A DNA stretch of 64,000 nucleotides, taken from NCBI GenBank assembly GCA_965112735.1, contig OZ218965.1:930001-994000 (forward strand), given 5' to 3'. Origin of the DNA: Phaeosaccion multiseriatum. Taxonomy: Eukaryota; Protista; Ochrophyta, other classes. Below are positions 1,351 through 49,655 of the stretch, piece after piece; positions within the stretch are counted from its first letter, which is position 1; each line of letters begins with the position of its first letter. The notes below the pieces were generated by a model that was not told the origin of the DNA, ran no database searches, and was given only the letters and a program-made list of their open reading frames with translations. A program made the translations under genes and the position numbers.

Positions 1351-3416
1351 CACAGCCAGGATGGTGACAGCGATTAAGCTGCACGCCCAAAGACGAGCGA
1401 CGCACGCGAGTGGTAAACGAAGGGGAGCTTCCCATTGGGGGTAGCAATAGATAGCAGGAGTAGATTGGCATGTATGGATTTACGCAGAAAGTAAGGAGGA
1501 GGGGTCTATTGCACAGACCCGCTAGCATGCGCAGAGAGAGCGGAGCGGAGGATTCAGGCTGAGTTGGGTCCTCAGGGCACCCAAGTAGTACTTGGTCCCA
1601 GGAGGAGAGCAACCGGGGACAGGGGAGGCTGCGTGGTTGGTGCGTCTCAGCGCCGTGGAGGTGCAGTGTGCAGGCTCATTAATTAATTTTAGAAATGAGG
1701 GCAGGGGGGGGGGGTCGAGGGAGGAGTCACCTACCACTCCACCACCCTCTACCTCCCTGCCCCACAGCCGAGACTCTCCTTTGTAGGGAACGTTTGTACC
1801 CGTAATAATAACAACAAGAACAAAATGAACGAGGCCCTCTCCCTACTGCTGGGCCGCCTACCTCGACAACATTAAAGCCTCTCTTAACCTACTCCTCCCC
1901 CAAGGGGGGGGAGCCTTCACAAAACTCAACTCGTCTCGGTGGTTCAGCTCTCACCCTTCCGCTACCTTGCTCCGCTCGTTTCGTGTGTCTCGACTCCATG
2001 GGGGGGGTCCAAACGAGCGCAGGGCATTGCGACAGACAGCGCGGGTGCGTGTGCTCTTTCTGTTGAGTTTGGCAACAAGGTGCGGGCACTATGAGCGCAC
2101 AAAAGGGCCTGACGGAGAAGAGAGGCAGACAAACTTGCGGCGGGAGTTGCGAAGAGCGAGGCTGACGAGGAGCGCGAATCCAGGGGGAGCGGTGAAGCGA
2201 TGGGTGAATATGTCAACGAGTCTGGCTCCGTGAGGCAGGCGGCATGCACGACTAGCAGAGAGGGAGCAGGATCGTGGGCCACGACTATTCAATTGGTATT
2301 GATGTATTTATCATGTTCTGAGAACATCACGCGATAAATACCTCTTCGGCTCTCTTTACTCTACCTTACCTGCTCATCCTTCTCGATCGCGTCGAAGCCC
2401 TTAAGCCGTACAGCCCTGCTCTCCTCCAATCCCGCCCAGCTTCAAGATGCTGCTGCACGACCGTATACTTCGCTCCTCCTTCCCTCTCAGGAGAAGCGCG
2501 GATCGAACACTCCAGGTGCCCATGCGCTCGCTCCTTCTGCTGCGCCACCAGAGTTCAATGGCACGCCCGTCAAATCTCCCGTGGCACCAGTCTCCTCTGC
2601 AGCTAGTGCCGGTGGCGCGGTCGGCAAAGCCCCTGAGCGTGTGCGTAGCACATAGTAGCGTAGAGCAGCAAAGCAAAGATCAAGGGCAGAGGGTATGAGC
2701 AAGAGCTCAGGCAGACCACACGGGGGGGTCGGATCGGTGAGTAGGAGTATGCGCAGCACACCCACCTTGTACGCCTTCTTCGTCCTCATCCGCTGTGCAG
2801 GCGTCGCGTGAAAGGTCGAGACAGCAGTGGCCGGACGCCGCGCAGGTCTGGGCACGAGCGACGAAGCAAGATTATGGCTCGCGGGAAGGGAACGAAGGGG
2901 AAGGGGAAGTGTCGAGTCGAACCTAATCACAGTAGCAGTACTAACAATCTGCGCCTCCGATATTGGGAACAAGGACTGCAAGATCGCCGCCTGACCATCG
3001 AGTGGAGCAGAGCGAGCACCCGTCACACCGTGGACAAATACGTGCTGCGAGTCACGAGAGCAATGACGCTCTTAGCACTTACATTCCCCACTAAGTCCAT
3101 CACCGGGAGGCCACTCACCGCGTGCCCGACGGCGTTGGGAAGACGCAGCATAGCGAGGAGCACGGCAATCGCCGCACTGTAGACCATGGCCATCTCCTCC
3201 CACATGCCGCAGTACGGCGAGGAATGGGAAGGATTGTAAGGACTGGCCTGGCATCCCAACCCGGAGCCCCTCCAATCGGGTGGTCGGGCCAAAGCGCCCT
3301 TGGAGCCTTTTATTTACCTTGGAAATGACAGGACACGCCCCCTTCCTAGGGCATCACAACCAACCCTACCCTGCCAAGACAACGCCTTTGTCTCTCCAAC
3401 CTCTCCTACCACCACC

Positions 3417-4280
3417 ATGAACATCATGCACGTGCTCTTGGGCTTCATCGCCGCCCTCGCCCTCGTCACTGGCGCCACCGTGCCGCTCGTCAAGGAGGAT
3501 CAACGTGAACTGTAAGTGCTGGAAGGATTGGACATGCACATTTGTGCGCCCGCTCTTTTCTTCCTTTGTCTCTGCGTGCCTGTGTCTAGCTTGTCTGGTC
3601 TCTTGCGCTCGACACTGACTTCGCTTCGCGTCTTCTCCTCTCCCTTCGTCACCTCCTCCTGTGGCTACGCGTCGCGCCTCTCTTCTTCCTCTTCCGTGAC
3701 CTGCGCTCGACACGGACTTCGCTTCGCGTCTTCCTTCCTTCCTCTCTCTTCGTCACCTCCTCCTGTGGCTACGCGTCGCGCCTCTCTTCTTCCTCTTCCG
3801 TGACCTGCGCTCGACACGGACTTCGCTTCGCGTCTTCCTTCCTTCCTCTCTCTTCGTCACCTCCTCCTGTGGCTACGCTTCGCGCCTCTCTTCTTCCTCT
3901 GCCGTGACCTGCGCTCGACACTGACTTCGCTTCGCGTCTTCCTCTCTCTTCGTCACCTCCTCCTGTGGCTACGCTTCGCGCCTCTCTTCTTCCTCTGCCG
4001 TGACTGGCCTCGACTCGGACTCGTTCGTCTTCCTCGTCGCCTCTGGTACGCCTCGCTTTGGCCGTTTTTCCCTCCTCGCGCTCCTTTCCACACGCACAGC
4101 TGGTCCGGCTCCAGCTCTGGCTCAGGCTCCGGCTCAGGCTCTCGCTCAGGCTCCTGGCGCTCTGGGTCCGGCTCCGGCTCGTGGGGCGGATACCGTGGTT
4201 GGGGCAAGAAGTACGGCCACAAGAAGGGTTGGGGCTACGGACGGGGCTTCTACGGCGGGTATGGACGCGGATGGTGGTGA
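3417..4280 (+). CDS. Secreted RxL-processed Gly/Ser/Trp/Tyr/Lys-rich peptide precursor, copy 1 (type A, 91 aa); exons 3417-3511 and 4100-4280
   Basis: ACCACC-ATG start, phase-2 intron GTAAGT...CACAG, and AATAAA at 4306. Spliced translation: [91 protein letters not shown]. Confidence 0.85.
3605..4000. repeat. Intronic minisatellite, ~104 bp unit x ~4, in the copy-1 intron
   Basis: The unit GTGACCTGCGCTCGACAC...GGCTACGC.TCGCGCCTCTCTTCTTCCTC starts at 3696, 3800 and 3904, plus a leading unit at ~3605. Confidence 0.9.
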
Positions 4281-4912
4281 ACGGTCCCACAGCCCCGGAA
4301 ATTGAAATAAAATGATATTCAAATGAGATACGTACTATTTATCGGTGTGTTCTTCTCCCGGTCCCGCCTACACCGTATCGACTCTGTGCTGGCACTCATT
4401 ATCCTGTGCATGAGAAGGCTAGAAAACAATCTCCGCTGCCTCCGCTCCCCTTCACGGGCCCATCCCCGGCGAGTAGAAGAAGACAAACGAGGTCGTCTAA
4501 CTCCCACATGCAGCCCTGCTCCTCTCCATTCCCTCTTCAGTTCAAGACTCAAGGCACTCCACATCGCCCTCTATAACGCCAATCACAACCTTCTGTTCAT
4601 CTCACGTCGGGCCATCTCTCTGAGCCCGTCGGCGCACAAATAGTCACTCAGCGGTACCTGCGGAACCGCTTCGGCAGCGGGACCTCGTCCCCCACGCGGC
4701 GTGCCTTCCTCTTCTTCGCTGCACGACGGCTATTGGGCTGCTCCCCCCCTTACCCTTACCCCTGTGCACGAGCAGCGGCAGCAGGGCTAGAGGCGGTGCG
4801 AGACTTCCTCCCTCCTCGCTTCTTGCCCTTCCCTCCCGTGCACGCCTCGCCCTCCTCGCGGCCATTGCGGGGGAGGCCTTCTTGAGCGCGCGCTGTCTCT
4901 CTCCTCAGCCTC

Positions 4913-5232
4913 CTCCCTCGCTGCTGATGCGCGCATGCCTCTCGCACATGCCGTTGCACTTCCCTCCGCGCGCCAGCTTATCACACTCTCCAACGCGGCA
5001 GCGCTTGACCTGAGCCCCACGAGAAATGCAACCGCCTCCTCGCTGCACCTGCTTTTTCTTTCTGGCACCCCTCTATGCGGCAGCGCTTCACCTTCACACA
5101 AACGCCTCCGTTCTTCGCATGCTTGCCACAGCCCTGCACAGAGCAGAAGCGGGCCCCACCAAGTCGACAGCAAAGCCCTTCGCGTAATTAAAGCTTAGCG
5201 CACCTTTCCACTGTACATGTCCTATTTCCCAT
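4913..5232 (-). pseudogene. Decayed WRKY19-like zinc-finger repeat gene (CxxxGCxKxAxxGGxCxxHG)
   Basis: Homologous to 8884-9188 and 55961-56283. The fragments CSVQGCGKHAKNGGVC and KRCRVGECDKLARGGKCNGMCERH are broken by frameshifts. Confidence 0.6.
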
Positions 5233-5685
5233 GATTGCCTGCGGCCAGACACTCGCCTTCCCCTTCTTGCTCGAGGTGCGGAGGGAGAACCACCTGACGC
5301 CTTGACCTCGGGGCTACTGCTCGCTCGTGTCGAAGGCCTCAGCGCTTCCTCCGTCTGCGTCTTGGGCACACGCAAGCTGAGCAAGTGAATCACAGCCAGA
5401 TGGATGGAAGGCATTCGAAAGTCAGGAACACAAGGGACTTACAGGGTTAGAGTTGCATCGGTTGGAAAGGGAGGAGACAGTGACGAGAAGGACCTTTGTC
5501 AAAGAGGGTTGAGGCGACCAGCGTCCTGAACGAGGGGAGAGTTCGGGGTGCCTTCTTACAGGGGGGGGGGGGCAGCAGGCCTGTATCATAGTGTGTGTGA
5601 CATTCCTGTACAGTTACAGAAGATTCATTCACTTGCAAATCTATTGACTGTAGAGTTACTTAGCTCTGACTACCCCTATAGGCTC

Positions 5686-5724
5686 CACGTGGTCATAGTG
5701 CGCACGTGTTGACCTCTTCACGTG
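5686..5724. promoter_or_regulatory. Cluster of three CACGTG (G-box/E-box) palindromes
   Basis: CACGTG at 5686, 5703 and 5719, conserved in the mirror copy at ~55515-55553. Confidence 0.35.
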
Positions 5725-7293
5725 CGATAGTTCTTTCCTAGCAGGAAATCTTTCCTCCGTAAGTAATTTACTCGGTTTTTCACCAAGGCTTTTTCTCGTC
5801 TCTCGGCTCTCCTTTCGTCTACGCTTGCCAGCGCTTCCTTCTCTCTTTCCGAACTACAACAGCCTGCTCCACAAGCCACACACGAGCGGTCTATCAGCAA
5901 GCAGGCCATCCATCCGTAGCACTTACTAGCCTGGGCGGTGCTTGACCGAGAGGCGTTGACCCGGACCAGTAGCAACAAGCCGCTGAGCGTATGGAGAGGC
6001 GTAGATGAGCCAGTGGGGGCGTGAAGGCGAAGCAAACAGCTTCTTGGCAGAATCCAGGTTTTTGAGTATTGGGTAGGTCTTTTTGGGTGGGCCCCCTGGG
6101 GACCAAATGAAGGCCTCAGCTTTGCCAGAGGCCTCCGCGGCGATCCGCCTCCCGCTCGAGAGACATTGTCCCCATTCGCTGCCGAGATCGAGACTTAGGA
6201 TCAAGCAAGAGGACTCACGCACGTGTGGAAGTAGAAGTCGCTTCAAAGAGGAAGCGAGGAAGAACAAAGACACGGCACTGTGAGCGGGCACAAGGGTGGG
6301 GAAGACGCAGCCAAACGCGCTGCAGGAGAAGCACGGATCGAACACTCCAGGTGCCCATGCGCTCGCTCCCTCTACTGCGCCACCAGAGCTCAATGGAACG
6401 CCCGTCAAATCCCCTGTGGGAGCAGTCTCCTCTGTAGCTAGTGCCGCGGTGGCGCGGTCGGCAAAGTCCCTGAGCGTGCACGCAGCACATAGTAGCGTAG
6501 AGCAATAAAGCAAAGATCAAGGGCGGAGGGTATGAGCGAGAGCTCATGCAGGCCGCAAGGGGGGGTCGGATCGGTGAGCAGAAGGCATACGCACCACGCC
6601 CACCTTGTACGCCTTCTTCGTCCTCATCCGCTGTGCAGGCGTCGCGTGAAAGGTCGAGACAGCAGTGGCCGGACGCCGCGCAGGTCTGGGCACGAGCGAC
6701 GAAGCAAGATTATGGCTCGCGAGAAAGGGGTAAGTGTCGAGTCGAACCTAATCACAGTAGTAGTACTCATAATCTGCGCCTCCGGTATTGGTAACAAGGA
6801 CTGCAAGATCGCCGCAATCTGAAGCCACATTCGCCACGAAGGAGCAAGTGACGGGGACGAGGTGACCATCGAGTGGAGCAGAGCGAGCACCCGTCACACC
6901 GTGGACAAGTACGTGCTGCGAGGCACGAGAGCAAGACTCTCTGAGCACTTACATTCCCCACAAAGACCATCACCGGGAGGCCACTCACCGCGTGCCCGAC
7001 GGCGTTGGGAAGACGCAGCATAGCGCAGAACACGGCAGTCGCCACAGTGTAGACCATAGCCATCTCCTCCCATGCCGCAGCACAGCGAGGAATGGTGGAA
7101 GGATTATGAGGACTGGCCTGGTATCCCAACCTGGAGCCCCTCCACAATCAGGTGGTCAGGCCGCACTTGGAGCCTTTTATTTATTTGAGAGGCATCTTGG
7201 AATGACAGGACATACTCCCTCCCTAGGGCATCACAACCAACCCTGCCCTGCCAAGACAACGCCTTTGTCTCTCCAAGCTCTCCTACCACCACC

Positions 7294-8054
7294 ATGAACA
7301 TCATGCACGTGCTCTTGGGCTTCATCGCCGCCCTCGCCCTCGTCACTGGCGCCACCGTGCCGCTCGTCAAGGAGGATCAACGTGAACTGTAAGTGCTGGA
7401 AGGATTGGACATGCGCATATAGCTCCACTTTTCAGTGCCTGTCTATCTTGTCTAGTCTCTTGCGCTCGACACTGATTTCGCTTCGCGTCTTCTCCTCTCT
7501 TCGTTACCTCTTCCTGTGGCTACGCATCGCGCCTCTCTGTCTTCCTCTTCACTGCCCCGTGACGGGCCTCGACTCGGACTCGTTCGTCTTCCTCTTCGCT
7601 TCTGCCCTCCTCGCTCCTTTCCCACACGCACAGCTGGTCTGGCTCCTCGCATTCCAGCTCCGGCTCTGGCTCTGGCTCCGGCTCCTCGAGCTCTAGCTCC
7701 GGCTCTGGCTCCGGCTCCGGCTCCTCGAGCTCGAGCTCCGGCTCTGGCTCTGGCTCCGGCTCCGGCTCCGGCTCCGGCTCCTCGCGCTCTAGCTCCGGCT
7801 CTGGCTCTGGCTCCGGCTCTGGGTCTGGCTCGTGGGGCGGATACCGCGGCCACAAGAAGTACGGCCACAAGAAGTACGGCCACAAGAAGTACGGCCACTA
7901 TCATGCAAGGACCCTTTGGTCACACTCCGGCTCCGGCTCCTCGCGCTCTAGCTCCGGCTCAGGCTCTGGCTCCGGCTCCTGGCGCTCTGGGTCCGGCTCA
8001 GGCTCCGGCTCGTGGGGCGGATACCGCGGCCACAAGCACGGATACGGATGGTGA
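7294..8054 (+). CDS. Secreted RxL-processed peptide polyprotein, copy 2 (type B, 171 aa); exons 7294-7388 and 7634-8054
   Basis: Same exon 1 and phase-2 intron as copy 1. Exon 2 reads (REL)WSGSSHSSS(GS/S)n..[73 protein letters not shown], an open frame with an internal RTL at 7908-7916. Confidence 0.85.
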
Positions 8055-8419
8055 ATATGACCACAGAGACAAACGGGTGACCTCCAGGATAAGCCGGGCA
8101 TATCTAATTTAAACACAATTTTCACCCCTCAACGCTCGCAATGCTGCTTTATCAGCGTCGCTCCCTGCTTTCCCTTCGCGCGCATCTCTGCGCTTCCTCC
8201 CCGCCCTGATCCTCTGTTACTGTCCTCATGCTACTGTATACCTGCTGGTTGGAGAGAAGAAGGAGGCGTAGCGACAGGTCGTAATATATATTCGGTATGT
8301 GTTAGCTCTCTGCGCCCCAACGCCCTGCATGCTCTGCATGGACTTGCCGCCAAGGGAATCTCGGTGGCCTAAAGCCTCGGCGGCTGAGGAGGGTGCCCTA
8401 GCAGCCACGCCATTATTGC

Positions 8420-9840
8420 TCAATCGCTGCCTCTTCACGGACCCATCCCCGGCGAGTAGAAGACAAACGAGGTCGTCTAACTCCCACGCATGCAGCCCTG
8501 CTCCTCTCCATTCCCTCTTCAGTTCAAGACTCAAGGCACTCCACATCGCCCTCTATAACGCCAATCACAACCTTCTGTTCATCTCACGTCGCGCCATCTC
8601 TCTGAGCCCGTCGGCGCACAAATAGTCACTCAGCGGTGCCTGCGGAACGGCTTCGGCAGCTGGACCTCGTCCCCCAGGTGTGTCTTCCTCTTCTTCGCTG
8701 CACGACGGCTATTGGGCTGCTCCCCCCCTTACCCTTACCCCTGTGCACGAGCAGCGGCAGCAGGGCTAGAGGCGGTGCGAGACTTCCTCCCTCCTCGCTT
8801 CTTGCCCTTCCCTCCCGTGCACGCCTCGCCCTCCTCGCGGCCATTGCGGGGGAGGCCTTCATGAGCGCGCGCTGTCTCTCTCCTCAGCCTCCTCCCTCGC
8901 TGCTGATGCGCGCATGCCTCTCGCACATGCCGTTGCACTTCCCTCCGCGCGCCAGCTTATCACACTCTCCAACGCGGCAGCGCTTGACCTGAGCCCCATG
9001 AGCCTCCCCGGTGCACCTGCACCCCTCTATGCGGCAGCGCTTGTCATCACCCCCGTGAGTCACACAAACACCTCCCTTCTTCGCATGCTTGCCGCAGCCC
9101 TGCACAGAGCAGAAGCGGGCCCCACCAAGTCGACAGCCGGAATTAAAACTTAGCGCACCTTTCCACAGTACATTTCCCTATTACCCATGATCACCTGCGG
9201 CCAGCAGACACTCGCCTTCCCCTTCTTGCTCGAGGTGCGGAGGAAGACCACCTGACGCCTTGACCTCGGGGCTACTGCTCGCTCGTGTCGAAGGCCTCCG
9301 CGCGTCCTGCGTCTGCATCTGGGGCACACGCAAGCTGAGCAAGTGAAGCACAGCCAGATGGATGGAAGGCATTCGAAAGCCAGGAACACAAGGGACTACA
9401 GGGTTAGAGTCGCATCGGTTGGAAAGGGGAGGAGACAGTGACGAGAAGGACCTTCGTTAAAGAGGGTTGAGGCGACCAGCGGCCTGCCCAGCGTCCTGAA
9501 CGAGGGGAGAGTGGGGGGGGGGGGAGCAGCCTGCTCCACAAGCCACACACGAGCGGTCTATCAGCAAGCAGGCAATTAATCCGTAGCACTTACAACCTGA
9601 TCTGGGCGGTGCTTGACCGAGAGGCCCAGCAACAACAAGCCGCTGAGCGAATGGAGAGGCGTAGATGAGCCAGTGGGGGCGTGAAGGCGACGCAAACAGC
9701 TCTTGGTAGAGTCCAAAGTGTGTGTCGGTTTTTGGTGGGAAGGTCTCGTTTTGGGTGGGCCCCCTGGGGACCAAATGAAGGCCTCAGCTTTGCCAGAGGC
9801 CTCCGCGGTACTCCGCCCCCCCCTCGAGAGACTTTGTCCC
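8420..9840. repeat. Direct duplicate of ~4440-6170 (second copy of the ~3.9 kb peptide-gene module)
   Basis: Near-identical sequence (ORFs 4756..4959 versus 8735..8938), lacking the ~280 bp G-box segment. Peptide-gene starts are 3877 bp apart. Confidence 0.85.
8884..9188 (-). pseudogene. Decayed WRKY19-like zinc-finger repeat gene
   Basis: ORF 8884..9105 reads QGCGKHAKKGGVCVTHGGDDKRCRIEGC...HGAQVKRCRVGECDKLARGGKCNGMCERH, the repeat consensus common in stramenopiles. Confidence 0.7.
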
Positions 9841-10069
9841 CAATAGACGAGAGAGGAGGTAGACGAGGAGCAGTCATCAGCACCAGTAGGAGTGGTGCTC
9901 CTTCTTTCCCCAAAGCGCAGCTGCTGCGGAGCTTAAGAGCATCATCTGGACAAAGCAAAGACCTTCCGGCACATTCTCTCACCCACTTTGACGCATCACA
10001 AGCAGCGCAGCAGAGAGGAACCAAGCACTCAGCTGAAGCGGAGGAGAGGCTCTACTTGTTGCTCGAGTT

Positions 10070-13000
10070 ATGGCAGGTCCCAACAGTACCACCAGCGGAG
10101 CAGCACAAGCAGGCGCAGCAGGACTAGAAGCAGCAGGAAGCGCCGCGGAAGCTACAGATGGAGGTGTGCCCTCCCACCCCCCTGCTGCGGCCGCTGGTGG
10201 GGGTGATGGCTTCAGACAAAGACTTCCCGCGACTCTCGCGCGAGAAGGAGGAAAGGGTGGAGGGCGGGAGGCGGCAGCAGCCACGGGTGGGGGTGGGCTT
10301 GGAGGCGGAGGAGGAGGGCTGACGCCAAAGAGGACGAGTGGAGGAGGTCTTGCGGCCACGGTGGGGCTGGGGGGCGGGATGAGCCTCAAGGCTGGAGGAC
10401 TCGGGTCCACCTCAGGCTTCCGCTTTGGTGGAGGACGCACACCGAGCAGTGGTAAGTGGGGCATTGGGTTGCCTCTGAGAACTGAAAGACAGCCTCACGG
10501 TTTTTCTACGTCCAAGTTAGACACACTGCGCACAGACTCGATGCCTCACCCGTTGCGTCATAGTTGCCAGACTAACGCGGCTTGCGCCCCATCCAATGGC
10601 GATCTCACGCTTGCCTCTCCTGCAACTGTACAATCCAGGCGCCCCTGCTCGCACAGGACTCCGAGTCGGTTCGGGTTTCAGCGGAGGCTTTCACCTCGGG
10701 GGGCACCGTGGCAGCAGCAGCGGCAGCAGCAGCGGTGGAGGCGGTGGTATGTCTTCCTCCTTCTTCAATCGTACTCAGGCCACAGCACCTCACTCCCATC
10801 CGGCCCAGCCAACGACCCCCGCCCCCACGGAGGCCGCGCCCGCGCAGCTCAGCTCCAGGGGCAGCGGCGAAGGCTCAGAGCGAGGAGGGGCGTCTCCTGC
10901 GGACAGCTTGAGTCCCCTCGAGCATAATCCCCACCACCTGGGGGTTGTGGAAGAGTCGAGAGCCGTAGCGGACACGACCACTCAGGCTGTCGCTGCTTCT
11001 CCCACAACCCCAGCGACGAGCAAGGACAAGAAAGATGCAACCAGAGCGAGCTGTGTAATGACTGCGCCACTTACCCCGGCCCCTATCACACCGGACTCTG
11101 CCTCTGCGTCTGTCTCTGTCTCCGCCTCCGCCGTCGAGATGCGCGGCCACCAGCAGGTCAATGGAGACAAAGCCGCCAGCGACTTTCACGCAGGGCTGCA
11201 AGTCGGGCCTGAGCAGGAGGGCGGCTACTCCCCCAGCCTCTCCCTCGCGGACTCGGCTTCCTGTCGCCCAATGACCTCGGCAACGGCCACGCCTCCCCCC
11301 ACTGATGCTGGACCTGTCTCTGTCGGCGCGCTAAGTGTGCAGGGACTCGGAGAGGCCATAGCGTGTGGCCGTGCTGATGAGGGGCCCGTGCAACAGCAGC
11401 AGCAGCAGAGATTCCAGTCCAGGCAAGGGCCCGAGTACGGAGGGGAGGGGCAGGGGCACGGGCAAGGGGAAGGGCAAGGGGAAGGGCAAGGGGAAGGCTC
11501 TGCTGCAGACCTCCTTGCTGACGCGCTGGCTGCGGGAGGAGGAAGAAGAGTAGGAATAGAAGGGGGAGTGACTACGAGCGAGCAGCAGCCAAACACGCAG
11601 CAGAGCACGCGAGCGCGCAAGAGGAAGCACAAGGCCTTGACCATGGCGGAGCTTGAAGGGGCGAATATCAACACCGTGGGAAGCTACAATCAGAGCAGCC
11701 TCAGCAGTGAGGAGGAGCGGACTCTTGCCTGGCAGGGGCCTATGGACCCCCTTGCTGGTGGCGGCGAAGGCTCGGGCGGAGGAGCGGATGAGGGACGGGT
11801 CGGGGAAGGAGAGGGAAACGATGCTGAACCACGGCGGCAACCAGTCGCGGCGAACAAGAAGCGGACGTCAAAGAAGAAGAGGGCGGGCGCACTGAAGGCC
11901 GGACAAGTGACGAAGGTGAGCACACTGAAGGTCAAGAAGAAGAAGCGCGCGCCGAGGACGACTCTCAAGAAGAAAGGCGGCCCTGGAAAGGAGAACAAGG
12001 GGCAAGGCGGAGATGGTGGGCGGGGGGCGAAAAAGAAGAAGACGACGACGACAGCACGCCTCCACGACTCACCGCGGGCAGGAGGAACAGGAATCGACGG
12101 CGGCTTGCTGACAGAAGGGGCATCGCAGGTGCGAGGCTCGGCGGTGGAGCTCAATGCCGACCCTGCGCCGCTGCAGGGGACGCCTCACACGAATGGAGGG
12201 GGGGTGGCACGCACGCACACGGGGACGGCTCGTGCTCCTCGTAGAGTGACTTGGCAAGACGACAATGGGGAGGGAGGGGCGGGGGCCGAGGAGGAGAATA
12301 CGACTTTCGAAGATATCGACAAGTTGATGGAGAGCGACATGAAGAGGGGTGTGAGAGCAGCTCCGGTGAGTGCGTGCGTGTGGCTGGCTGCTGCCGTGGA
12401 CACCTACTTGAATGGGGCGGCGAGGAGGCAGGCCTTCTCTTGACCTTTTACTGGCGCCTTCTTTCTGCGTTTGCTCACATTGACTTCGTGACCGTCTTAC
12501 TCATGATTGGGCGCCGTGAAGTGACGGTGCTCGCGTGCGCAAGCCTCACCCCGCCCCCTCCCTCTGTTTGGTCTTTTATAGTCGGTGGACGCGTCAACCT
12601 GTGGTGTCGCACGAGCATTTCTTGGCAGAGTGAGTCCCCAGCTCGCTACAGCTATCCACTCTCACAGCTTGCACCTCTCCCCACCACATGTTCTCGCTGC
12701 TCACTCACTCGCTCCCGCGCCTGCGATAGATGGGGGAGGCATCCATCCTGGACAGTGTAGTGGAGATCGAGAGCTTGCGTGCGGAGCTCTTCCAAAAGAC
12801 GAAGACCCTCGCCAACCTCGTCGAGGTAAGCACTGCCCACGTGGGGGCCACTGCAGTCGCCCGTTGCAGTAGCACAGGCCACCCGAAGCACGGCTCGGAG
12901 GCTTCGAGTAACCAGGTCACCAGTGCGCCGGGTGAGGGTGCATAGACCACTGACATTTTGAATGGTCCATGATTGTACCCTGCCTCTGCGGTCACGGTGT

Positions 13001-13964
13001 GGACTTGCCCTGTCTCCAACCGGCCGTGCTTGCCCTCTTTCTCGCTCGTCGACTGAAGGTGACGGACCTGCTTGAGGAGATGAGACTCGGCCTTCCCCCT
13101 GACCAGAGCGCCCCTGAGCTTCATCCCACCAGCGAGCATCTCCCTGGGGAAGGTGGAGGAGAGGCTCAGGACCCAGAAGGGCATCATGGGCGTCTCCCTC
13201 CGATCCGCGAGGAGGAGGAAGGCCAAACCTCTGCTGCTGAGTACGGAGGAGGAGCCGAGGCGGGCAATGACGAGTGGGGGAATAGCACAGCCGGTACCAC
13301 GCAGGCGAAGAGCAAGGACAAGGGAAGGGCTAATGCCCGGGATGGTGCTGCTCCCGTCGGTAGCAGCACCCCCTCCGTTGACGCTCCTGGGCTGGATGGT
13401 AAGGAGCAGAGGCAGCCTAGCCTGGCCTTCCCGCTTCCCGCTGCTCCTGCCGTCGGCGCTGCCGATGCTGCGAGTCATGGACTCCGACCGGCGGGTGAGG
13501 GTGGAGAGGGGGCGCGGGAGGCTTCACCCGACCTTCCTGGGCCGCCCCCTTCCTCACCCACTTGCTCAGCCCAGCCTCATCCGCACAGCCGAGCTCCAAG
13601 CAGACACGAGGGGGAGCCTTGGCAATTCCCGGTCACGGACGGCGGTGGTGCCACGGCAGGCTCATGCTCGGGAGAGGGAGGGCAGGAGTACTTTCAAGCC
13701 TCGGGGCCGGAGGAGGCGAGCCACGCCAGCACTGCCCTTGGAGGTGATGCGGACGGACGAGGGGGTAACGGAGGCGCGCTCAGCAGCATTGGCAGCAGTG
13801 CGGCAAAGGAAAGCACTCCTCCTCAGACGACGCCCGCTCCCTTCGACACTGTGCTCGGGGTTGGAGGGAGCGCAGTCGCCCATGGCGGGCCGGGCCCCAG
13901 GGGCGAAGGCATTGACAACGTCCGTGCCCCCCCGCAGCAGGCTCAGTATATGGATGAAGATTAG
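10070..13964 (+). CDS. Hypothetical low-complexity protein (~1036 aa) with basic NLS-like tracts and a short coiled coil; exons 10070-10451, 10639-12365, 12730-12825, 13059-13964
   Basis: Four ORF segments join through phase-compatible GT-AG introns. Basic tracts include RARKRKHK, KKRTSKKKR and KVKKKKR; the helical segment is EIESLRAELFQKTKTLANLVEVTDLLEEM. Confidence 0.7.
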
Positions 13965-15063
13965 AGCGGCGGTGTTCAAGTCAAGCGCGCAAGGAGCGGA
14001 GCAGCCGGCCACGCTACAGTGTACATGCTCGCTCGAGGGTTGTGCGCCTTTACTTGACTCTAGCTGCTGTGTAAGCATGTGTAGATTGTAGGGAGGGGGG
14101 TGGGTGGTTGAGGAACGCAGGCACACACCTCACTCTGCTGTCCCTTTGTGTTGGCGAGGGGGGGGGGACGGAAGGAGGGAGTTGTGCGCGTGGGTGCGCT
14201 GCTGCTTCCTAGCAACGCGCCAGTCGTTGGGGCCAGTCCAATCGATTCCGATTTCTTTCCGGACACGACGACCGAACGAGCGTTTGACAACAGCGGAGGA
14301 GTGTGTAGCTCAAGTTACAGTAGTGATATAGGAGTAGCAGGCAATGAGGCCCAGTCTCCGCCCTGTACGCCATATACCTCCAAACAAGTTCTGAGTGGGC
14401 CTTCATTGTGGACCCAACTAAATTTTAGTTTCAGTTCTCACTTTTTTTCTGTGAAGTGATGCTCTCACATCTATATGTTTGTTATATAGCAGCGGCAGTA
14501 GGACTCGCGGCAGGAGAATTACGAGGAGAATACTTGTATGTTGCACGAATAGCAGTCACACAAGCAGCGGCGTCACAAGGACATTTCTAAGCGCTGGTCT
14601 TGGGCAGCAAAGAAAATTTGGAAGCCTTGAAGTGATCGGGCCACTTCCGTCGTTTCTGTCACAGAAGCAGCGGCCGCAGCTCAAGAGGAGGCACGAGAAC
14701 TAGCAGAGAGGCAGCGGAGGTGCAGGAATACTCCCAAAGCATCTTCCGATTCAGGATAAGTTTTGTGGGGGGCGACCGTGCGGAGGGAGCGTCTTTGAGC
14801 GGGCCAGCGGCAGGAGGGGGAGGCACGGAGGCGCTGGGCATCAGGAACCGTCCACCGGCTCGAACAAGCCCCTTTTCTAGAGGCCTTGTGGATATGAAGA
14901 AGGGGGCGCAGCAGGCACTGTACCTCCCTGCTCAGCAGAGGAAGGAGGGCAGGAGAAGGCACCGATGAGGCTGCAAGGCACTCCTTTGAAGGCCACCGAG
15001 CTCGTCGCGCTCAAGATTATGCAGCAACTCGAAGAGCAGGGCACAGGAAAGGTCCCTTGCCAG

Positions 15064-15742
15064 GTGCGGTCCGAGTCCCCAGCGGCGGGTCAAGTCATGT
15101 CGCAAACTCGGCCCAGTCAGTTGTGGACGGCCCCTACAACCCCCCAACGTGCTGGAAGAGGAAGTTGTGCGCTGCGCGGTCGTTGACTTTCTTCATCATA
15201 TCTCTTCACAGAGCTGGAGGAATGCCTACGTGAGCAAGCATCTTTCACCATGCACATCACATGGCAGTGTGACGCGGTCCGTGGACCGCATATACCCGGC
15301 TCGGCGGAATGGATACACCTTGGGTGTGAACACACTCGCTTCGGCAGCCATTCAGCAAGACCTTACTATATGCAAGGCGCTGTACAACATGGACTTGTTG
15401 TCCATTTTGTACAGCGCCTTGCATATAGTGAGGTCCTGCTGCATGGCTGCCGACGTGAGTGTGTTCACATCCAAGAGGTACCCATGCCGCCGAGCCCAGT
15501 ACATGCGGTCCACGGACTGCGTCACACTGCCATGTGATGTGCATGGTGAAAGATGCTTGCTCACATAGGCTTTCTTCCAGCTCTGTGAAGAGATATTGGT
15601 CCGCCGCAACAAAAGTCAACGACCGCGCAGCGCACATGCATCCTCCTCTTCCAGCATCTTGGGTTTTTTTAGGGCCCGTGCACAACTGAGTGGTCTGAGT
15701 ATGCGACATGACTTGACACGCCGCTGGGGACTCGGACCGCAC
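15064..15742. repeat. Fold-back (inverted duplication) of the 5' half of the F-box-like/ankyrin-like gene, ~330 bp arms, 5 nt loop
   Basis: Arms 15064-15394 and 15400-15742 are centred on ATGGAC-ttgtt-GTCCAT. Both arms encode AYVSKHLSPCTSHGSVT.SVDRIY.ARR.GY on opposite strands. Confidence 0.9.
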
Positions 15743-16114
15743 TTGCGAGGCTGAGGCGGGGAGAGGGAGGGAGGAAGGAAGGAAGGAAGGAAGAAAGGAT
15801 GGAAATATGGAAGGATGGAAGGATGGAAGGAAGGAAGGAAGGAAGGAAGGAAGAAAGGATGGAAGGAAGGGAGGGAGGGATAGTGTGGGAGTTGCGGAGG
15901 GGGGTTAAGTAGGGGAGGTTGGCATGGTTGAGTGAAGAAGAGTGAAGAGTGGTATTGTTTTCGATTGTACTCATATATGTGTGGAGGGCTTGGGCGGGAC
16001 GTTTTCCATCACCGCATCTCCCCTACTTGAGGTCACTGGGGCCCCAACGAACAACGCAAAACCCCCTCTGCCGTGTCACCCCGCCCTGTCCTCTCCTCTT
16101 CTGTACATCATAAG

Positions 16115-17086
16115 GTGGGCTTTGCAGTCGACACGCACATCTACCGACAAGCAGTGCGCTACGGCCTCACTGTTAGAAAGGAAGAGAAGGACGTCGAGGG
16201 GAGAGTAGAGGAGGCGCTCACAAGGTGAGTTTCAGTTTCAATTAGCTAGAGTGGGTCGCTTTCGTCGGCTGCTGAGAAACACCCTACCCTTTCCCGCCCT
16301 TTCCCTCGCAAAGCTGTGCCATCTCTCTCTCTCTCTCGGGCGCGCGCTCTCCCCCATGGTGTTTATTAGCACCCACCCTCTCCCACTCCCCCCCGCCCCC
16401 CTCTCTCCCCGCCCCGTCTCTGTACCCAAACATGCCTCACCTCACGTCCCCTCCCCTCCCATTCACTGCCATCCCCCTCCTCCCCTTTTCCTGTCCCTGC
16501 TGTCGTGTCCCCTGTCGCCGCCCGAACCTTCGAGCATGCAGCCACCAGCCACTTGCCCGTGAGGACTGGAGCAAGCTGCATGTTCAACTCATCTACTTTG
16601 GCAGAGAGTTTTGCCCGGTGCGTATCGAAGATTGAAGGCGGTGGGGGGGGCGGGGGACTGTAGAGAAGAAAGAGAACATGTCCACATGAACAGGTCTTTG
16701 ACGAACCTTTGTGGGGTTGCTTCAACACGTAGGAGTCAGTTTGGGCATGTCCAGACGTAGCCCATTGTTTGTGTTACGCACCCCAGCGATGCACGTTCCC
16801 TTCCCTCTCTCTTTCTTTGGTGTGGTGCCTCTTGCTCGGATCCTCTGATCATCGTTCGCCTCTCTCTGCCCGTCCCCTCTGCTGCCATCCATCCATTCAT
16901 TCCATCCATCTGTGCATGAAAACACACCCCGAGCAGGCCAAGAAGCACACCCCTGCAGAGTGCCCGATTTGCTGCTGGATCAACAAGGCCGGCAGGGTCT
17001 CGAGTGGCGGTGGAAACGGAGCCACCAGCGCAGACGGAGGAGGGGAAGGAAGAGGAGGAAATAGTACCGAATACAGGAGAGCATAG
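16115..17086 (+). pseudogene. nth: 3' half of endonuclease III (HhH-GPD DNA glycosylase) with introns retained; exons ~16115-16224, ~16542-16617, 16937-17086
   Basis: Spliced reading: VGFAVDTHIYRQAVRYGLT...VEEALT / REDWSKLHVQLIYFGREFCP / AKKHTPAECPICCWI. This carries the catalytic VDTH motif and a C-terminal Cys cluster; no 5' exons were found upstream. Confidence 0.75.
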
Positions 17087-17963
17087 AAGACGTGACTGCC
17101 GAATCGCTGCAGTCCACCGGCAGAAAGACCGGGAAACACATCATCCTCTATAGAGAGAGGATGGAGCAAATAGAGGCCCGTAACGGCCAAACCTGGCCCA
17201 GCAGCAGCGAGCCGGCTAAGCGAATGGACAAGAACGATGACTCAGTGGGCGTGAAGGCGACGTAAACAGCTCCACGGTAGACGTCCCCCCGTAAGGAATC
17301 CTCAAGCACACGCACGCACAGGGCATCGTATAGTGGTATAGGATAGCAGGCCCGGTCTCAGCCCTGTACGCCATATACCTCCATCCAAGGCCTACCCAAC
17401 AAAATTTCAGTTTCAGTTCCCCCGGGTATTTTCTGTGAAGTGATCGCCCCACGCTGTTTAACAGAGAAGCGGCAGTAAAGCAGAAGCAATACTTGCATGT
17501 TGCACGAGTACCGTTTGCACAAAGCAGCGGTGTGTCACAGGGACACTCCCAAACGCTGGTCTTGGTCGGGACTAAGGGAATTAGAGGCATTGAAGTGCGA
17601 AAGTGGTCTGCCCCACATCGTTTCCTGTTATAGCAGCTGGAGCAGCGGCCGCAGGGGGACAGCGGTAACAGCAAGAGGAGGAAAATAGGACTCGGTGGCA
17701 CGAGAACTAGCAGCAGAGGCAGCGGAGGTTGCAGGAACACGTCAGAAGAATCTTCAGATTCAGGATAGTGCTGTGGGGAACGACCGTGGGGAGGGAGGGT
17801 CTTTGAGCAGACCAGCGGCAGGAGGGGGAGGCACTGAGGCGCTGGGCATCAGGAACCGTCCACCTACTCGCAAAAGCCCCTTTCCCAGAGGCTTTGTGGA
17901 GATGAAGAAGGGGGCGCAGCAGGCACTGTCACCTCCCTGCTCAGCAAGAAAAAGGCACCAACT

Positions 17964-19085
17964 GTGGGGCTGCAGGGCACTCCTTTGAAGGCCACCCTGC
18001 TCGTCATGCTCGACATCATACAGCAACTCGAACAGCAGGACACAGGGAAAGTCCCTTGCCAGGTGCGGTCCGAGTCCCCAGCGGCGGGTCAAGGCATGTC
18101 GCAAACTCCACCCAGTTGTGTAACGCAGAGGGGGGCTTGTCAGATTCCCAACGTGCTGGAAATTGAGAATGTGCGCGGCGTGGTCCTTGACTTCATTGGG
18201 GCGAAGCAATATCTCTTTATTGCTTCGATCAGCTGGGGCTGGAAGAAAGCTTACGTGAGCAAGCATCCTTCACCATGCACATCACATGGAAGTGTGACGC
18301 AGTCCGTAGACCGCATATACTGGGCTCGGCGGCATGGGTACCTTTTGGATGTGAACACACTCACGTCGGCAGCCATGCAGCAAGACCTTACTATATGCAA
18401 GGCGCTGTACAACATGGGCTGTCCGTCTGGACCACGGGTGGTGCGGGGAGCCATAAAGAATGGCAGGCACGGCGTTGCCATCCTGAGGTGGCTGCACGGC
18501 CTCCCTGGCAAAGAGGGATGCCGTTTCGACACACTAGTGTGCGAGTATGCCGCCCTGGTTGGAGCAACGGACAAGCTGGAGTGGCTTCTCTCGGACGAGG
18601 TCAATGCGCCGTTCAGTTTCACCATCTGGTTGACCGCCCTACAAAGCAAGAATCTCGAGGCCATAAAGTGGGTCTTCGAACACCCCAAGATCAGGGCCGA
18701 GATGGAGAGTGCGACAGCCCCTGCTGCCCCGCCGCAACCCCTCTTGGCCACCCAGAATAGTGAGTGGAGAATGGGGGCCAAGTTCGCCATCACCTACAGT
18801 ACTTTGGAGGTGCTCAAGTGGCTGCACGCCAATGCACGTGAGTTCTGTGAGTGGAATCCAGAGCTCTGCCAAACGGCAGTGGGCGTAGCGCAGAGCCTTG
18901 AGATGCTGCAGTGGCTCCGCTCTGAGGAGGTGCGGTGCGAGTGGGACCAGTGGGCCTGCCCTGTGGAGTTGAAGGCATCGGATGAAGCTTCCGGTCACCA
19001 CCGAGAGCCCACAGATCCCGCCGCAATGAGAGAGATTAAGGAGTGGGTGCACGCCAACGGGCATCCTTGCACATGCTCGGACTGA
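17964..19085 (+). CDS. Intronless F-box-like + divergent ankyrin-like repeat protein (LEVLKWL..C.W family); first in-frame ATG at 18006
   Basis: N-terminal VVLDFIGAKQYLFIASISWGWKKAY box, followed by repeats LEAIKWVFE, LEVLKWLHANAREFCEWN, LEMLQWLRSEEVRCEWD and EWVHANGHPC. The 5' leader is frameshifted relative to the copy at 47022-48425. Confidence 0.75.
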   Translation: MGLQGTPLKATLLVMLDIIQQLEQQDTGKVPCQVRSESPAAGQGMSQTPPSCVTQRGACQIPNVLEIENVRGVVLDFIGAKQYLFIASISWGWKKAYVSKHPSPCTSHGSVTQSVDRIYWARRHGYLLDVNTLTSAAMQQDLTICKALYNMGCPSGPRVVRGAIKNGRHGVAILRWLHGLPGKEGCRFDTLVCEYAALVGATDKLEWLLSDEVNAPFSFTIWLTALQSKNLEAIKWVFEHPKIRAEMESATAPAAPPQPLLATQNSEWRMGAKFAITYSTLEVLKWLHANAREFCEWNPELCQTAVGVAQSLEMLQWLRSEEVRCEWDQWACPVELKASDEASGHHREPTDPAAMREIKEWVHANGHPCTCSD

Positions 19086-19932
19086 TGCAGCTCGGATGCG
19101 AGCTGAATGAGAAGGAGAGACGGCGTGCGCCTGTAAAGTTGGGACGGCTTATGCCTCCTGCCACACGGAGCTGATGGGCCGCGAGTGAGGGAGCGAAAGA
19201 TCTTTAAGCCCGTCCGAGGGTAGCGGCCGCAGCTGCATGCCACAGAGGCAACGCAGTGTCCTTCTGTGTACGGCTTCTACAGCCAATTGTGCAGCTCTCC
19301 AATGCGTCGCTCCGCCCCGCGCAATTTCTTTTAATTAAACAAATTGAAAAAATAATCAAGGATGAGAGTGTATGTGGTTGAAGAGAAAGGGTGTGTTCTA
19401 CAGCAGCGGGCACTACCAACTATGGCACACGCACGAATGCGCGCAGCGCGAACCGTGGTGGTGTAGGATAGCAGCAATGGGGCCCGGTCTCCATATACTT
19501 TCAACCTAGTCCTGAATGGGCCTTCATTGTTGACCCATCTAAATTTCAGTTTCAGTTCCCCACTTTTTTCTGTGAAGTGATCGCCCTCACATCATTTGTT
19601 GTTGTACTCAGCAGCAGGAGCAATACAAGGAGAGTACATGTATGTTGCACGAGTACCCGTTGCACAAGCAGCTACTCGTCGCAGGAGTACTCCTCAGCGC
19701 TGGTCTTGGTCAGCAAGGATTTTTGGAAACCATTGAAGAGAGAGGAGAGTGAGAAAATAGAGAGGAAAGGAGTGCAGCGGAATTGCCATGAAGAGGAATG
19801 GTCTACTGAGATGGCCCTAATGCCTTCACCATTCCCCTTGGGTGTTGTGGAGTCAGGCACCGTCCACGAAGACGAGTCGACTCACTCGCCCAGGCCCCAA
19901 GAAGTCAATTCCAGCCAGAGGCCCCGTTTGGA

Positions 19933-26600: not shown

Positions 26601-28720
26601 CGCCTGTGCACGCACGCACCCACACACACGTTGCCGTCCTACAGACTCAACCTGCTGCAAGGAGTCGTGGCGTTTCATAAGGGCGACGAGAGCACCGCCA
26701 CGGTCAAGATCGGATTGGGTACGCACCCCATCGTAGCGCTTGCTTGTGCTGCTACCCTCGCCTTATGTGCTGGCTAGTCCCTCTTACGTATGTGCTGCCT
26801 AGTCTCTCTTATTGTACGTTGAGGAAGTGTGAAAGGTGTGGTACAAACGGGTGCATTGGTCACTGACCTTTTCAAGCCCTTCTCTACCCTCCCCCCCTGT
26901 CTCCCATCTCCCCTCTCCCCTCTCCCCCCTCCCCTGCCCCGCCTACCACACGGAGACAGCCAAGCAAGAGTGCTTGAGCCTGTCGGTCCAGCCCTCTGCT
27001 GTGGCCCTCTTGAAGGCCCAGGCAGCGTCGCTGTACGGACAAGTGGAGGACAGAGTCGCAATCAGAGCCCTTCGAGCATCTAAGGTGAGGCACCATCGCC
27101 AGCAGCAGCGGTATCAGCAGTAGGGAGGGGAGGGGAAGGAGAGAGGACGCGAGGTAGAGCGCTCAAAGCAGCGGGCAGCTGTGGCCGGCGTGGAGGGGAA
27201 CGACGCGGAGGAGCTTTGCGGGTACAATTTCTGTGTTTTGCCTTTTGAAACGCCTCAACCCACCGCGCGCGCACACACACTCCCCGTTCGAACATCTGTT
27301 GTTGGCTGCTGTATCACCACCTGCTGACGTGCGAACATCTGTTGCTGCTGCTGTATCACCAACTACTGATATCACAAACGGCTGATGCTTATCCAACTGC
27401 TTGCACCTTTCAGGGCAACTTGGACGGCGCCCTGGGGTACCTGGAGCAGCTGCGCCAGAGGAAGGTGCGTGCAACATCCCGTGCCTATGCCTACACCAGA
27501 GAGAGGGCGGCTCTCTCCCATGTCCTTCATTGCGTTGAAGAAACTGAGAAGGTCCTTCATCTCCTTCTCAGTTTCTCCACGCCTTCGGTGGTAAAAGAGA
27601 AGAGAGAAGAGGAAATCCGATGTGCCCTGTCTAACGGTTTCTCTCGCCACCCTTCTCACGTGCCTGCCGCTTGCGTGTGGGGATGCCCAATCTTATGTGG
27701 GTGCCCAATCTTGTGGGCATGCACAACTGTTTTGTTTCTTCGACAGACGCGGCAGGAGATGGAAGTCGCTCACCGCGATAATGAGAGGGCCATGAAGCAA
27801 TACGGGAAGACGGCTGACGGAAAGGTACACGCATATATATATATATATAGAGAGAGAGAGAGGGAAAGAGAGAGAGAGACAGAGAAGACAGAAGAGAGGG
27901 CGAGAGAGAGAAGAGAGGGAGAGAGAGAGGGAAAGGGAGAGGGGGGGACGAGAGCAGGGGGTCCCCTTGGATGGCAGCACACACCGTGAACATCAAGCAA
28001 TAGCCCTCCATCGCTGCAGCTCACGCACGCACCCACGCACGCACCCGCGCACCACGCTCTCTCTCTCTATCAGGACTACGTGAACGTGCTGCTGGTGCGG
28101 TCACTGGGGGAGGCGCTCGGAGTGATCCAGGGGGGGAAGAGAGGACGCCAATCGGACACAAGCGCCGCCGCCAGGTCAGGGGCGCGCGCGAAGGGGGAGG
28201 GGAGGAGGCGAATGGAAGAGAGAAGGGAGGCAGGGAGTGAGGGTGGGGGCGAAGGAGAGGGAAGGGAGGGAGGGAGGGAGGGAGGGAGGGAGATGTATTG
28301 CCGGTGGTGCATGTGTTGATGTGTGTGGGTGTGCACGCAGAAACCGGGGGTCTCGCCTCCTTCGCTGACCTCGAGCATCGAATCCCTGCCCTTCCCGCCC
28401 GTGCTCTCGTGCGTGCGTGCGTGCGTGCGCGTGTGTATATATGTGTGCGTGTGCCTCCCATCCCCCCCCTTGCTTCCCTATGACACTGCAGCGCTTCGAC
28501 TTCGCCTGGCAGCGGCGGCGGTGGCGGAAACCCTCCTCTGTCCGAGCTTGACGTGGTGGAGGCGCTGCGGTGGAGCAACAATAACGAGGCTGACGCCATG
28601 GTGCGCCTCACTGCACCGGCTTGGATGAGGGGCGGCATGATGGAGGTGGATGGGCCGGCAAGGGAGGGGGCGGGAGGCGGTGGTAGCTCAACGGATATGG
28701 AAGTGGACACTCCCGAAGAA

Positions 28721-32700: not shown

Positions 32701-34685
32701 TTGGTTCCGCCCAGCTCTTGCTGCTGCCCTGACTCTTGGTGATGCTGCAAGAAGCCCCAAGTTGCTCTGCAACTCGAGGGGATACAAGTACATTAAGGAT
32801 GGGGAGGGGATGGCAGCGGACGGGGAGGGGAGGGGAAGGCAGTGGATGAGAAAGGCGGGGAGGATTGGGTAGCAATGCATGGTTGCGATACCAACACTAT
32901 TCATCAAATACACACTCACCTGACGCTGACGTCACGAACGGATCTGTATCCGTGACTACCCAACAGTGGCTGGACTTGCCTCTCCTGTGTACGTATGTGT
33001 GTGTGTGTTTGTGTGTTATGTGTGTGTGTGTGTGTGGGTGTGTATGTGTGTGTGCGTGTGTGCGTACGTGTGTGTGCGCAGCAGCGCAAGGATTGGATCA
33101 ATAGCCGCGACAGGGGGAAACTGGTCATGGGTTGAGCAAGTAGCAAAGAGAGTCCATCTGGAGCCCTCTGTCTGTGTACCTCTCTACAACACCCCGCCCG
33201 TCGACCCCAAGCCCCCCCCCCCCCCCCCTTACGCACAGGTACTTAATACCCTTCTTCACCTGTGCACAGCGCGTACGGTCCAGCTGGCGGGGCCCTTGGA
33301 ACTGACGTATGTCTGGAGGGCCCAGCAACAGGCGCCGCCGGAGCCTTTGGAGGGCAGGAGCAGGGGGGAGGACGAGGAGGACGACGAGGAGGACGAGGAG
33401 GAGGACGACGAGGATGGAGGGAGGAGGCCGTCGGAGCATTTGGGCAGTGGGGTGTCTCCTTCTTCCCTTCCTGGCGGGATGAGGAGCCCCTCCTCGCCTG
33501 CTGCAAGGAGGCTCTCGTTGTGTTGGTCTTTGTGCTTGTGCTTGTTGTTGCTCTGTAGTGCTGGGTGGGGTGAGCTATGACCTCCCTCCTCGCCGTCCTC
33601 GCCGTCGTTTTGACACTCTTGACAGCCCTGGCACCTCTCAGCAAGGGCCCTCACCAGTGCGGCATCAGCCTGCATGTGGCATCATGTGTATGTGGGGGGG
33701 GACGTCTAGTGGTCAGCGACAAGCACACGAGAGGATATCGGGAGAGAGGGAGAGAGAGGGGGAGAGGCGCGAGGACAGCGCTCCCCCATGATGACTCCGC
33801 CGCAAGTAGTCCATTCCCCACCCCCCTCCCCTCCCCCCGGGAAAGTTGAATGTTCCGTGAAGGTTCCTCCACCCCCTACGCTCCACACCGAGCGGCTTGA
33901 CCCCTCACCTCAGAGACGCTGTGCAGCAGGGAAATGTCGTTGCGGCGGAAGGTGTCCCAGTCCGCTGCCGGCCGCTTCAGCACGGCCACTGGGGGGCTGC
34001 AGCCGTCAGAAGGACCAGGGGGGGAGGGGGAAGACGGCAGCAGCGAAGGCAGAGACGTCGTCGCCGCCGTCGGACCCCCAAGGGCCGAAGAGTCAGCTGC
34101 GGGGGCCCGCACAGCGTCTGGGGCCTTTTTAAGAGGATGGCAGTGCATGGTAGTAGATGGCAGTGAATGGGTCTGAGGCTGAGGCTGGGGCTGAGGTTGG
34201 GGCGGGGGCCGCTTACTGCGGAGGAGCTTCTTCAAGACACGCTTCCTCTCCTTGACGGACGTGAGGAGGGTGGAGCTCGGCACGGAAATTATCTGGGCAG
34301 CAGGCAGAAGAGCGCAAGACAAGGTGCCAGGACAGAGGAAGGTTGAGGGGTGAGTGGGTTTAAGACAAAGATATCCTCGCTGGAATGCCTAAGGTACTGG
34401 CTGAAGGAGCGGTGGAAGAAAAGAGACGGCACTTCCTCTCCCCACCATCGCCGGCCTCTACCGGGCTCACTCGGCCGACCTCTCGCCCTCTCCCTCTTCC
34501 CTCTCCCCCCCCCCTCCTTTAAAAAGGAGCCGCTTAAGTCTGACCACACCTACCTCACGAGTGAGAGCACCGTCCACATCGGTACGGAGCAGCACAAGCA
34601 CCTCTACCCGACCCACTGCATCTCGTCCCCCCTTCTTCTGCATGGAGGCCGTTCGCCCACCAACGCACTCGCCTCCGCTCCCCTC

Positions 34686-46680: not shown

Positions 46681-47021
46681 TACACCACTACGGTGCGCGC
46701 TGCGCGCGTTCTCTCTTCAACCACATACACACACACACACACACTCTCATCCTTGATTATTTTTTCAATTTGTTTAAGAAATTGCGCGGGGCGGAGCGAA
46801 GCATTGGAGAGCTGCGCAGTTGGGCTGTAGAAGCCGTACACAGAAGGACACTGCGTTCCCTCTGTGGCATGCAGCTGCGGCCGCTACCCTCGGACGGGCA
46901 TAAACATCTTTCGCTCCCTCACTCGCGGCGCATCAGCTCCGTGTGGCAGGAGGCATAAGCCGTCCCAACTTTACAGGCGCACGCCGTCTCTCCTTCTCAT
47001 TCAGCTCGCATCCGAGCTGCA

Positions 47022-49622: not shown

Positions 49623-49655
<33 letters not shown>

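Follow-up and report, generated by a model that had tools for sequence, protein, structure and literature searches.

A conserved HARTL motif in two paralogous genes of Phaeosaccion multiseriatum as a candidate internal RXL processing site

One five-residue motif, HARTL, is conserved in the second exon of two paralogous genes (c2 and c4) located in a stretch of 64,000 nucleotides of Phaeosaccion multiseriatum, which was analysed as a whole and is referred to as the window. As read from the sequence, this is the present extent of the finding, and the motif is, on the same grounds, older than the split of c2 and c4 and was retained in both copies. Tentatively, we regard these two genes (type B) as encoding two-product precursors, in which both RXL sites, REL at the end of the leader and RTL within HARTL, would be cut by a diatom-like secretory endoprotease. 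This reading is quite possible without being probable. The interpretation of HARTL is partly supported, because the motif is isolated by its composition, has diverged by synonymous changes only and is found in a diatom-like RXL layout.

Both genes belong to a two-exon family of five copies (c1 to c5), which were found by means of a word from exon 1, ATGCACGTGCTC, occurring at five places in the window and at none in shuffled sequences. Six-frame motif scans of the window revealed no copy or fragment besides these five, and a search of the window for other genes combining a signal peptide with RxL yielded none outside this family. The product of exon 1 consists of MNIMH, a hydrophobic core, TGA and an acidic stretch of 12 residues closing in Q-R-E-L. 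Exon 2, which begins with C-TGG, encodes a basic domain rich in Ser, Gly, Trp, Tyr, His and Lys. The donor site (overall GTRAGT; CT/GTAAGT, in c4 GTGAGT) is situated within the Leu codon of REL (phase 2). Since the intron thus lies inside this codon, the leader and the mature domain are encoded as separate exon modules. The introns are pyrimidine-rich, about 245–590 nt long and carry a conserved CACACGCACAG at the 3' end.

Gene c2 (7294–8054, forward strand) comprises exon 1 (7294–7388), encoding the putative signal peptide and the acidic pro-stretch up to R-E-L, a pyrimidine-rich intron of 245 nt (7389–7633; donor from 7389, acceptor CACACGCACAG) and exon 2 (7634–8054; 139 amino acids plus the stop codon at 8052–8054). 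Gene c4 (53862–53251, reverse strand) has exon 1, also with a 12-residue pro-stretch, at 53768–53862 and exon 2 at 53251–53471 (72 amino acids plus stop codon). Type A, which lacks the internal RxL, is represented by c1 (3417–4280, forward strand; exon 1 3417–3511, intron 3512–4099, exon 2 4100–4280) and by its mirror copy c5 (56950–57710, reverse strand; exon 1 57710–57616, exon 2 57124–56950; 98.4% identity). The introns of type A contain a 104-nt tandem repeat (3.8 copies at 3636–4021 and 3.0 copies at 57222–57518). Type B introns lack this repeat, and most of the difference in length between the introns of the two types is due to it. The remaining copy, c3 (51138–51262, reverse strand), retains only the leader exon and approximately 30 nt from the start of the intron, where a rearrangement into fold-back DNA interrupts it; exon 2 is missing.

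The copies are distributed over a large inverted segmental duplication (2061–19819 versus 46311–57996), the arms of which are mostly 90–98% identical and lie about 27 kb apart. Copies c1 and c2 are found in the left arm; c5, c4 and the truncated c3 belong to the right arm. Both arms differ by deletions, and the region of about 7422–14878 has no counterpart in the right arm. A fold-back of about 690 nt (86% self-complementary) is located directly behind the break of c3 at 50268–50956 and is also present in the left arm at 15061–15746.

The N-terminus encoded by the leader exon resembles a signal peptide, with MNIMH, a hydrophobic core of 12–13 residues and a c-region of small residues (TGA); the best 11-residue window of the leader reaches a mean hydropathy of 2.88. 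Signal peptidase probably cuts after ...VTGA. The subsequent pro-stretch, TVPL(V/A)(K/E)EDQREL, occurs in five of five copies and directly precedes W and a Ser/Gly block in the copies possessing exon 2. When the leaders were compared (3417–3512, 7294–7389, 51262–51167, 53862–53767 and 57710–57615), 96 of 96 bases were identical among c1, c2 and c3, and c4 and c5 were found to share the exchange of V-K to A-E as well as several silent changes; the leader haplotypes follow neighbourhood and not gene type. This grouping by neighbourhood, despite the 98.4% mirror identity of c1 and c5, suggests that the leader exon has been gene-converted locally and independently of the mature exon.

Exon 2 of c2 is composed of a long Ser/Gly block, WGGYRG, three HKKYG repeats, Y-H-A followed by RTL, a second Ser/Gly block, WGGYRGHKHGYGW and the stop codon. 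HARTL occupies positions 7902–7916. As an earlier note on this DNA had claimed, c2 and c4 contain an internal RTL. In c2 it is AGG ACC CTT (7908–7916) and in frame with exon 2; 7908–8054 extends from the Arg codon of RTL to the stop codon of c2. HARTL is likewise read in the exon 2 translation of c4 (CAC GCA AGA ACC CTC, 53297–53311). In c4 the motif is followed by a tail of 14 residues made up of His, Gly and Trp (53296–53254) and by the stop codon, and the literal RTLR(G) reported for this copy is indeed present. These readings presuppose the splice model of exon 1 and exon 2, which was derived from the sequence. The use of different codons for the two RxL sites was also reproduced: REL in the leader of c2 is CGT GAA CT/C, interrupted by the intron, and the internal RTL is AGG ACC CTT in c2 and AGA ACC CTC in c4.

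HARTL occurs once each in c2 and c4, in both cases just behind a Lys cluster. It is absent from type A, in whose exon 2 product W and a Ser/Gly block are followed by WGGYRG, a short Lys cluster and a tail of Gly, Tyr, Arg and Trp. About eight residue types make up exon 2. The exon 2 products of c2 and c4 each contain a single Ala, a single Thr and a single Leu, all of them within HARTL, and type A contains no Ala, Thr or Leu past the Leu at the exon junction. If the residues of exon 2 of c2 or c4 were shuffled, R-x-L appeared in 4.2% of the shuffles.

Between c2 and c4, HARTL differs at three bases, all of which are synonymous (non-synonymous differences: 0); the chance of this outcome is 0.019 under equal rates, or 0.037 if only transitions are considered. 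The adjacent KKYGHKKYG shows one synonymous change in 27 nt, and the dipeptide between it and HARTL is changed (HY versus GW). The flanking non-coding DNA of c2 and c4 is 82–86% identical, which corresponds to a divergence of roughly 14–18%. In a blastn map, the promoter-proximal part and the leader of c2 matched c3 at 95–99% and c4 at only 82%, and the flanks of c3 and c4 are about 86% identical; c2 and c4 are older paralogs and do not mirror each other across the large inverted duplication. Since the sharing of HARTL is one evolutionary event, the statistics draw on 15 bases. The support for a translation of the proposed frame and for purifying selection on HARTL is modest but real. Contigs of short reads (four runs of one sample) cover 7865–7999 with zero differences, and HARTL of c2 is therefore not an assembly error.

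Another explanation, which we consider possible but rather unlikely, is that the genes are real and HARTL is an uncleaved spacer or a relic; the repeat in c2 would then originate from slippage or unequal crossover of hexamer-repeat coding DNA, and R-x-L would be coincidental. A chance of 4% for RxL is not negligible in this context. In the protein alignment, the 13 C-terminal residues of c2 share columns with the tail of c4 and with that of type A (RGFYG--GYGRGWW). Compared with c4, c2 is longer by about 32 residues (W and a Ser/Gly block), which lie between RTL and this common tail. The DNA of the extra block matches exon 2 of c1 and the first unit of c2 itself. Aligned in this way, the second unit of c2 resembles an insertion of a Ser/Gly block that separates RTL from the tail common to all copies with exon 2, as the spacer explanation would have it, and the Ser/Gly blocks consist of tandem hexamer and 39-nt repeats, which are prone to expansion. 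Furthermore, Trp-led modules occur every 6–30 residues in all copies with exon 2, and a W behind RTL is thus expected anyway.

These observations also weaken two statements of the earlier note. It had claimed that the unit restarts after HA-RTL in c2, and W-S-H-S-G-S, the second Ser/Gly block and WGGYRGHKHGYGW, the latter including WGGYRGHK, do follow RTL up to the stop codon. However, W with a Ser/Gly block is a recurrent element all along these proteins, so that such a restart is not unique to the position of RTL, and an expansion of the hexamer repeats could explain it. The different, His-rich peptide whose release from c4 had been proposed is the 14-residue tail found there, but type A keeps the homologous tail attached without a preceding RxL; an obligatory release of the c4 tail is therefore not implied. 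In one respect the case is stronger than the note had put it, as HARTL is older than the divergence of c2 and c4 and persists in both. On the other hand, an uncleaved spacer leaves unexplained why the sole Ala, Thr and Leu are united in one motif belonging to the same RXL class as that of the leader, and why three of three substitutions in HARTL are synonymous.

Cleavage at both RXL sites, the reading preferred here, has its closest parallel in the biosilica proteins of diatoms. In many of these proteins the tripeptide RXL closes a pro-region behind the signal peptide, which an unknown protease removes (PMC5525289). The basic repeats of Sil1p are each closed by RRIL or RRNL, which are missing from the mature silaffins, and in frustulins, cingulins and silacidins RXL is found at the ends of repeats; a general RXL endopeptidase was proposed (PMC4557024). 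Silicanin homologs of Parmales also contain RXL domains (PMC10328945). In comparison, the proteins described here show the sequence features of an N-terminal ER signal peptide (MNIMH, core and TGA) and a short pro-region ending in RXL before a low-complexity domain. In c2 and c4 an internal unit also closes with RXL on its C-terminal side, which is not the case in type A.

Like Sil1p of Cylindrotheca fusiformis (PMC4557024), the type B proteins combine a putative signal peptide, a pro-region up to RXL and a basic domain rich in Ser, Gly, Lys and Tyr with R-x-L closing a unit. Unlike Sil1p, they have one internal site instead of seven and a single Arg (A-R-T-L) instead of RRIL or RRNL, and sequence homology is lacking. 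Moreover, they are rich in Trp and His and come from a non-diatom alga with no known link to silica. With the cingulins CinW and CinY and the silacidins of Thalassiosira pseudonana (PMC4557024, PMC9650480) they share the organisation as RXL-punctuated, putatively secreted low-complexity precursors and the alternation of Trp- or Tyr-rich with Ser/Lys-rich segments; however, cingulins comprise several hundred residues and silacidins are acidic, whereas the proteins of this family have 90–170 residues and are basic. Lys clusters also occur in this family. A pentalysine cluster is defined by 5 Lys within 12–14 residues in a Ser-rich context (PMC9650480); c2 formally reaches this count with 6 Lys, both in 12 and in 14 residues, and c1, c4 and c5 stay below it with 4.

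Since no homology to known proteins was found, the case for membership in the biosilica type is one of layout. The earlier note had compared RxL as a processing site to silaffin RRIL/RRNL, to PEXEL and to oomycete RxLR. By analogy, the silaffin part of this comparison appears tenable with respect to the position after the Lys cluster and to the acidic pro-stretch with RXL, but the residues and contexts of PEXEL and RxLR do not agree with those observed.

If the preferred reading applies, c2 and c4 would be genes for small, secreted, disordered and strongly basic proteins (pI of the exon 2 products approximately 10.7). The leader exon would supply an ER signal peptide and subsequently the acidic pro-stretch of 12 residues closing with R-E-L, and in type B HARTL would separate the Lys/Tyr/His cluster from the C-terminal aromatic/His module. 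One RXL endoprotease of the secretory pathway would cut REL as well as RTL, as was inferred for the precursors of silaffins, silacidins and cingulins. Two silaffin-like units of 94 and 45 residues before trimming would result from c2, the second one being the candidate product encoded by 7917–8051; c4 would yield one unit and the 14-residue His/Gly/Trp peptide, and type A a single product. The P1' residue varies over the REL and RTL sites (W, W and R), which counts against cleavage at both of them. Splicing, secretion and cleavage of the c2 and c4 products are what we infer from this layout, and a mineral, metal, adhesive or antimicrobial role of the peptides may be envisaged. Metal binding by the GH repeat would be pure conjecture.

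It is unlikely that the loci are not functional genes at all, being either a duplicated low-complexity repeat beside a short ORF or a decaying family, in which case the interpretation as peptides would be meaningless. The truncation of c3 fits this explanation, and alternative frames are open in the repeats, the Ser/Gly DNA being open in several frames. A search for RNA runs holding the locus found none; only four runs of one sample were obtained, whose contigs contain no exon-exon joint. As the contigs from these runs cover the intron of c2 at exon-like depth, the runs behave as DNA, and the negative outcome of the search for expression evidence counts in favour of a non-functional locus. The same applies to the lack of any homolog or annotated protein in the searches.

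For these searches the exon products were submitted to the databases separately and not as a spliced protein. A Pfam scan with four exon products gave no match. In the word-index protein search with exon 2 of c2, Ser/Gly words dominated the output and none reached E ≤ 0.001; the searches with the tails of type A and c4 provided no candidates. A HMMER profile search with the four exon 2 products against 1.84 billion representatives resulted in one match (E 1.3e-4), which was rejected as a relative, because it aligns only (SG)6 of a repeat protein of 1621 amino acids and thus reflects low complexity. No relative was detected in feature searches of the ESM Atlas, none of 599 pattern matches from a metagenome scan with exon 2 of c4 was confirmed by tblastn, and the DNA pattern of exon 1 had 0 matches in metagenomes. 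The family is thus an orphan in the word, profile, metagenome and Atlas searches. Small two-exon genes of low complexity are usually not called and are penalised by bias filters, so these blank searches are weak evidence of absence.

Several observations argue against non-functional loci. Four copies retain the signal-peptide-like leader, the canonical donor and acceptor sites and the frame in spite of the turnover of the introns, and the preservation of the leader exon, the GTRAGT donors and the CACACGCACAG acceptor, while intron length ranges from about 245 to 590 nt, supports the reading as genes. The donor of c4, although altered from GTAAGT to GTGAGT, corresponds to the consensus as before, G-W-stop is retained with differing stop codons, and the differences in leader and HARTL are mostly synonymous. 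GC3 amounts to 0.81 in the proposed frame, although it is 0.83 in one alternative frame.

A host-targeting function of RTLR in c4, or of RxL in general, after the manner of oomycete RxLR or apicomplexan PEXEL is very improbable. In PEXEL/TEXEL motifs of Plasmodium and Toxoplasma, Arg is located at P3 and Leu at P1, the motif is cut in the early secretory pathway, and the pentamer reads RxLxE/Q/D or RRLxx. The positions of Arg and Leu are the same in the sites described here; however, the contexts are REL-WS, RTL-WS and RTL-RG, so that P2' is S or G and not E/Q/D as required in the pentamer, and lineage and purpose are different. The comparison to PEXEL therefore does not hold. In oomycete effectors, RxLR is located a short distance behind the signal peptide, in most cases together with dEER and a C-terminal effector domain. 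The regular expression RxLR literally matches c4, and oomycetes are stramenopiles as well. In c4, however, RTLR lies near the C-terminus (58 residues into exon 2 and 14 residues from the C-terminus; only 13 residues follow it), neither EER or dEER nor a WY or other effector domain is present, and c2 reads RTLW. RTLR in c4 is best read as a coincidence, and this part of the earlier comparison does not hold either.

The link to the subtilase S1P/SKI-1, which had also been suggested, was likewise not borne out. Substrates of this enzyme require a basic residue, Arg or Lys, in position P4 (RXXL or RX-hydrophobic-X), but here this position is occupied by Gln (QREL) or Ala (ARTL), and Arg stands at P3. 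An origin of HARTL from duplicated intron-acceptor or spliced-leader DNA was rejected, as the similarity is too weak. The shepherin polyprotein of plants and the GHG-type histidine-rich proteins of squid beak are secreted, Gly/His-rich proteins, and shepherin is released from one precursor. His-Gly repeats in such peptides are linked to metal binding or coacervation. With these proteins the family shares a putative signal peptide and a Gly/His/aromatic low-complexity sequence, a resemblance in composition only; linkers and processing rules differ, and no homology was detected.

RXL has been treated as a trait of diatoms (and Parmales), and many RXL-type families in a non-diatom alga would extend its range. 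It would be a bold and, in our view, doubtful generalisation that the secretory pathway of ochrophytes uses RXL endoproteolysis as a general maturation code, one that predates silica formation in diatoms or is independent of it, and that a portable leader exon is used here for the release of small peptides rich in Trp, His, Gly and Lys from multi-unit precursors. Such peptides would possibly be metal-binding, adhesive, antimicrobial or mineral-directing. If true, the RXL code would be older and broader than silica formation. Internal RXL sites, if cut, predict defined small peptides, and the 14-residue tail of c4 would represent a short and easily synthesised test substrate for finding the RXL protease.

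Beside this family, the ORFs of the window are typically of extreme low complexity. Nine large ORFs yielded no informative Pfam match, an ORF of 615 amino acids had no exact counterpart among recorded proteins, and a search of Rfam was blank. A CCT microsatellite of 578 nt (38531–39108; about 190 units) corresponds to a poly-Glu tract in an ORF of 755 amino acids on the minus strand, and a large ORF at 29771–32875 (reverse strand) contains QQQLVIHQEQQQ. The word CTGTATCACCAACT (reverse complement AGTTGGTGATACAG) is located inside a 42-nt tandem repeat at 27285–27369. At 44432 (forward strand), a short ORF possesses a signal-peptide-like N-terminus up to ...CVARVQA, followed by F. This N-terminus would correspond to the bipartite plastid-targeting pattern of ochrophytes and fits a complex red plastid.
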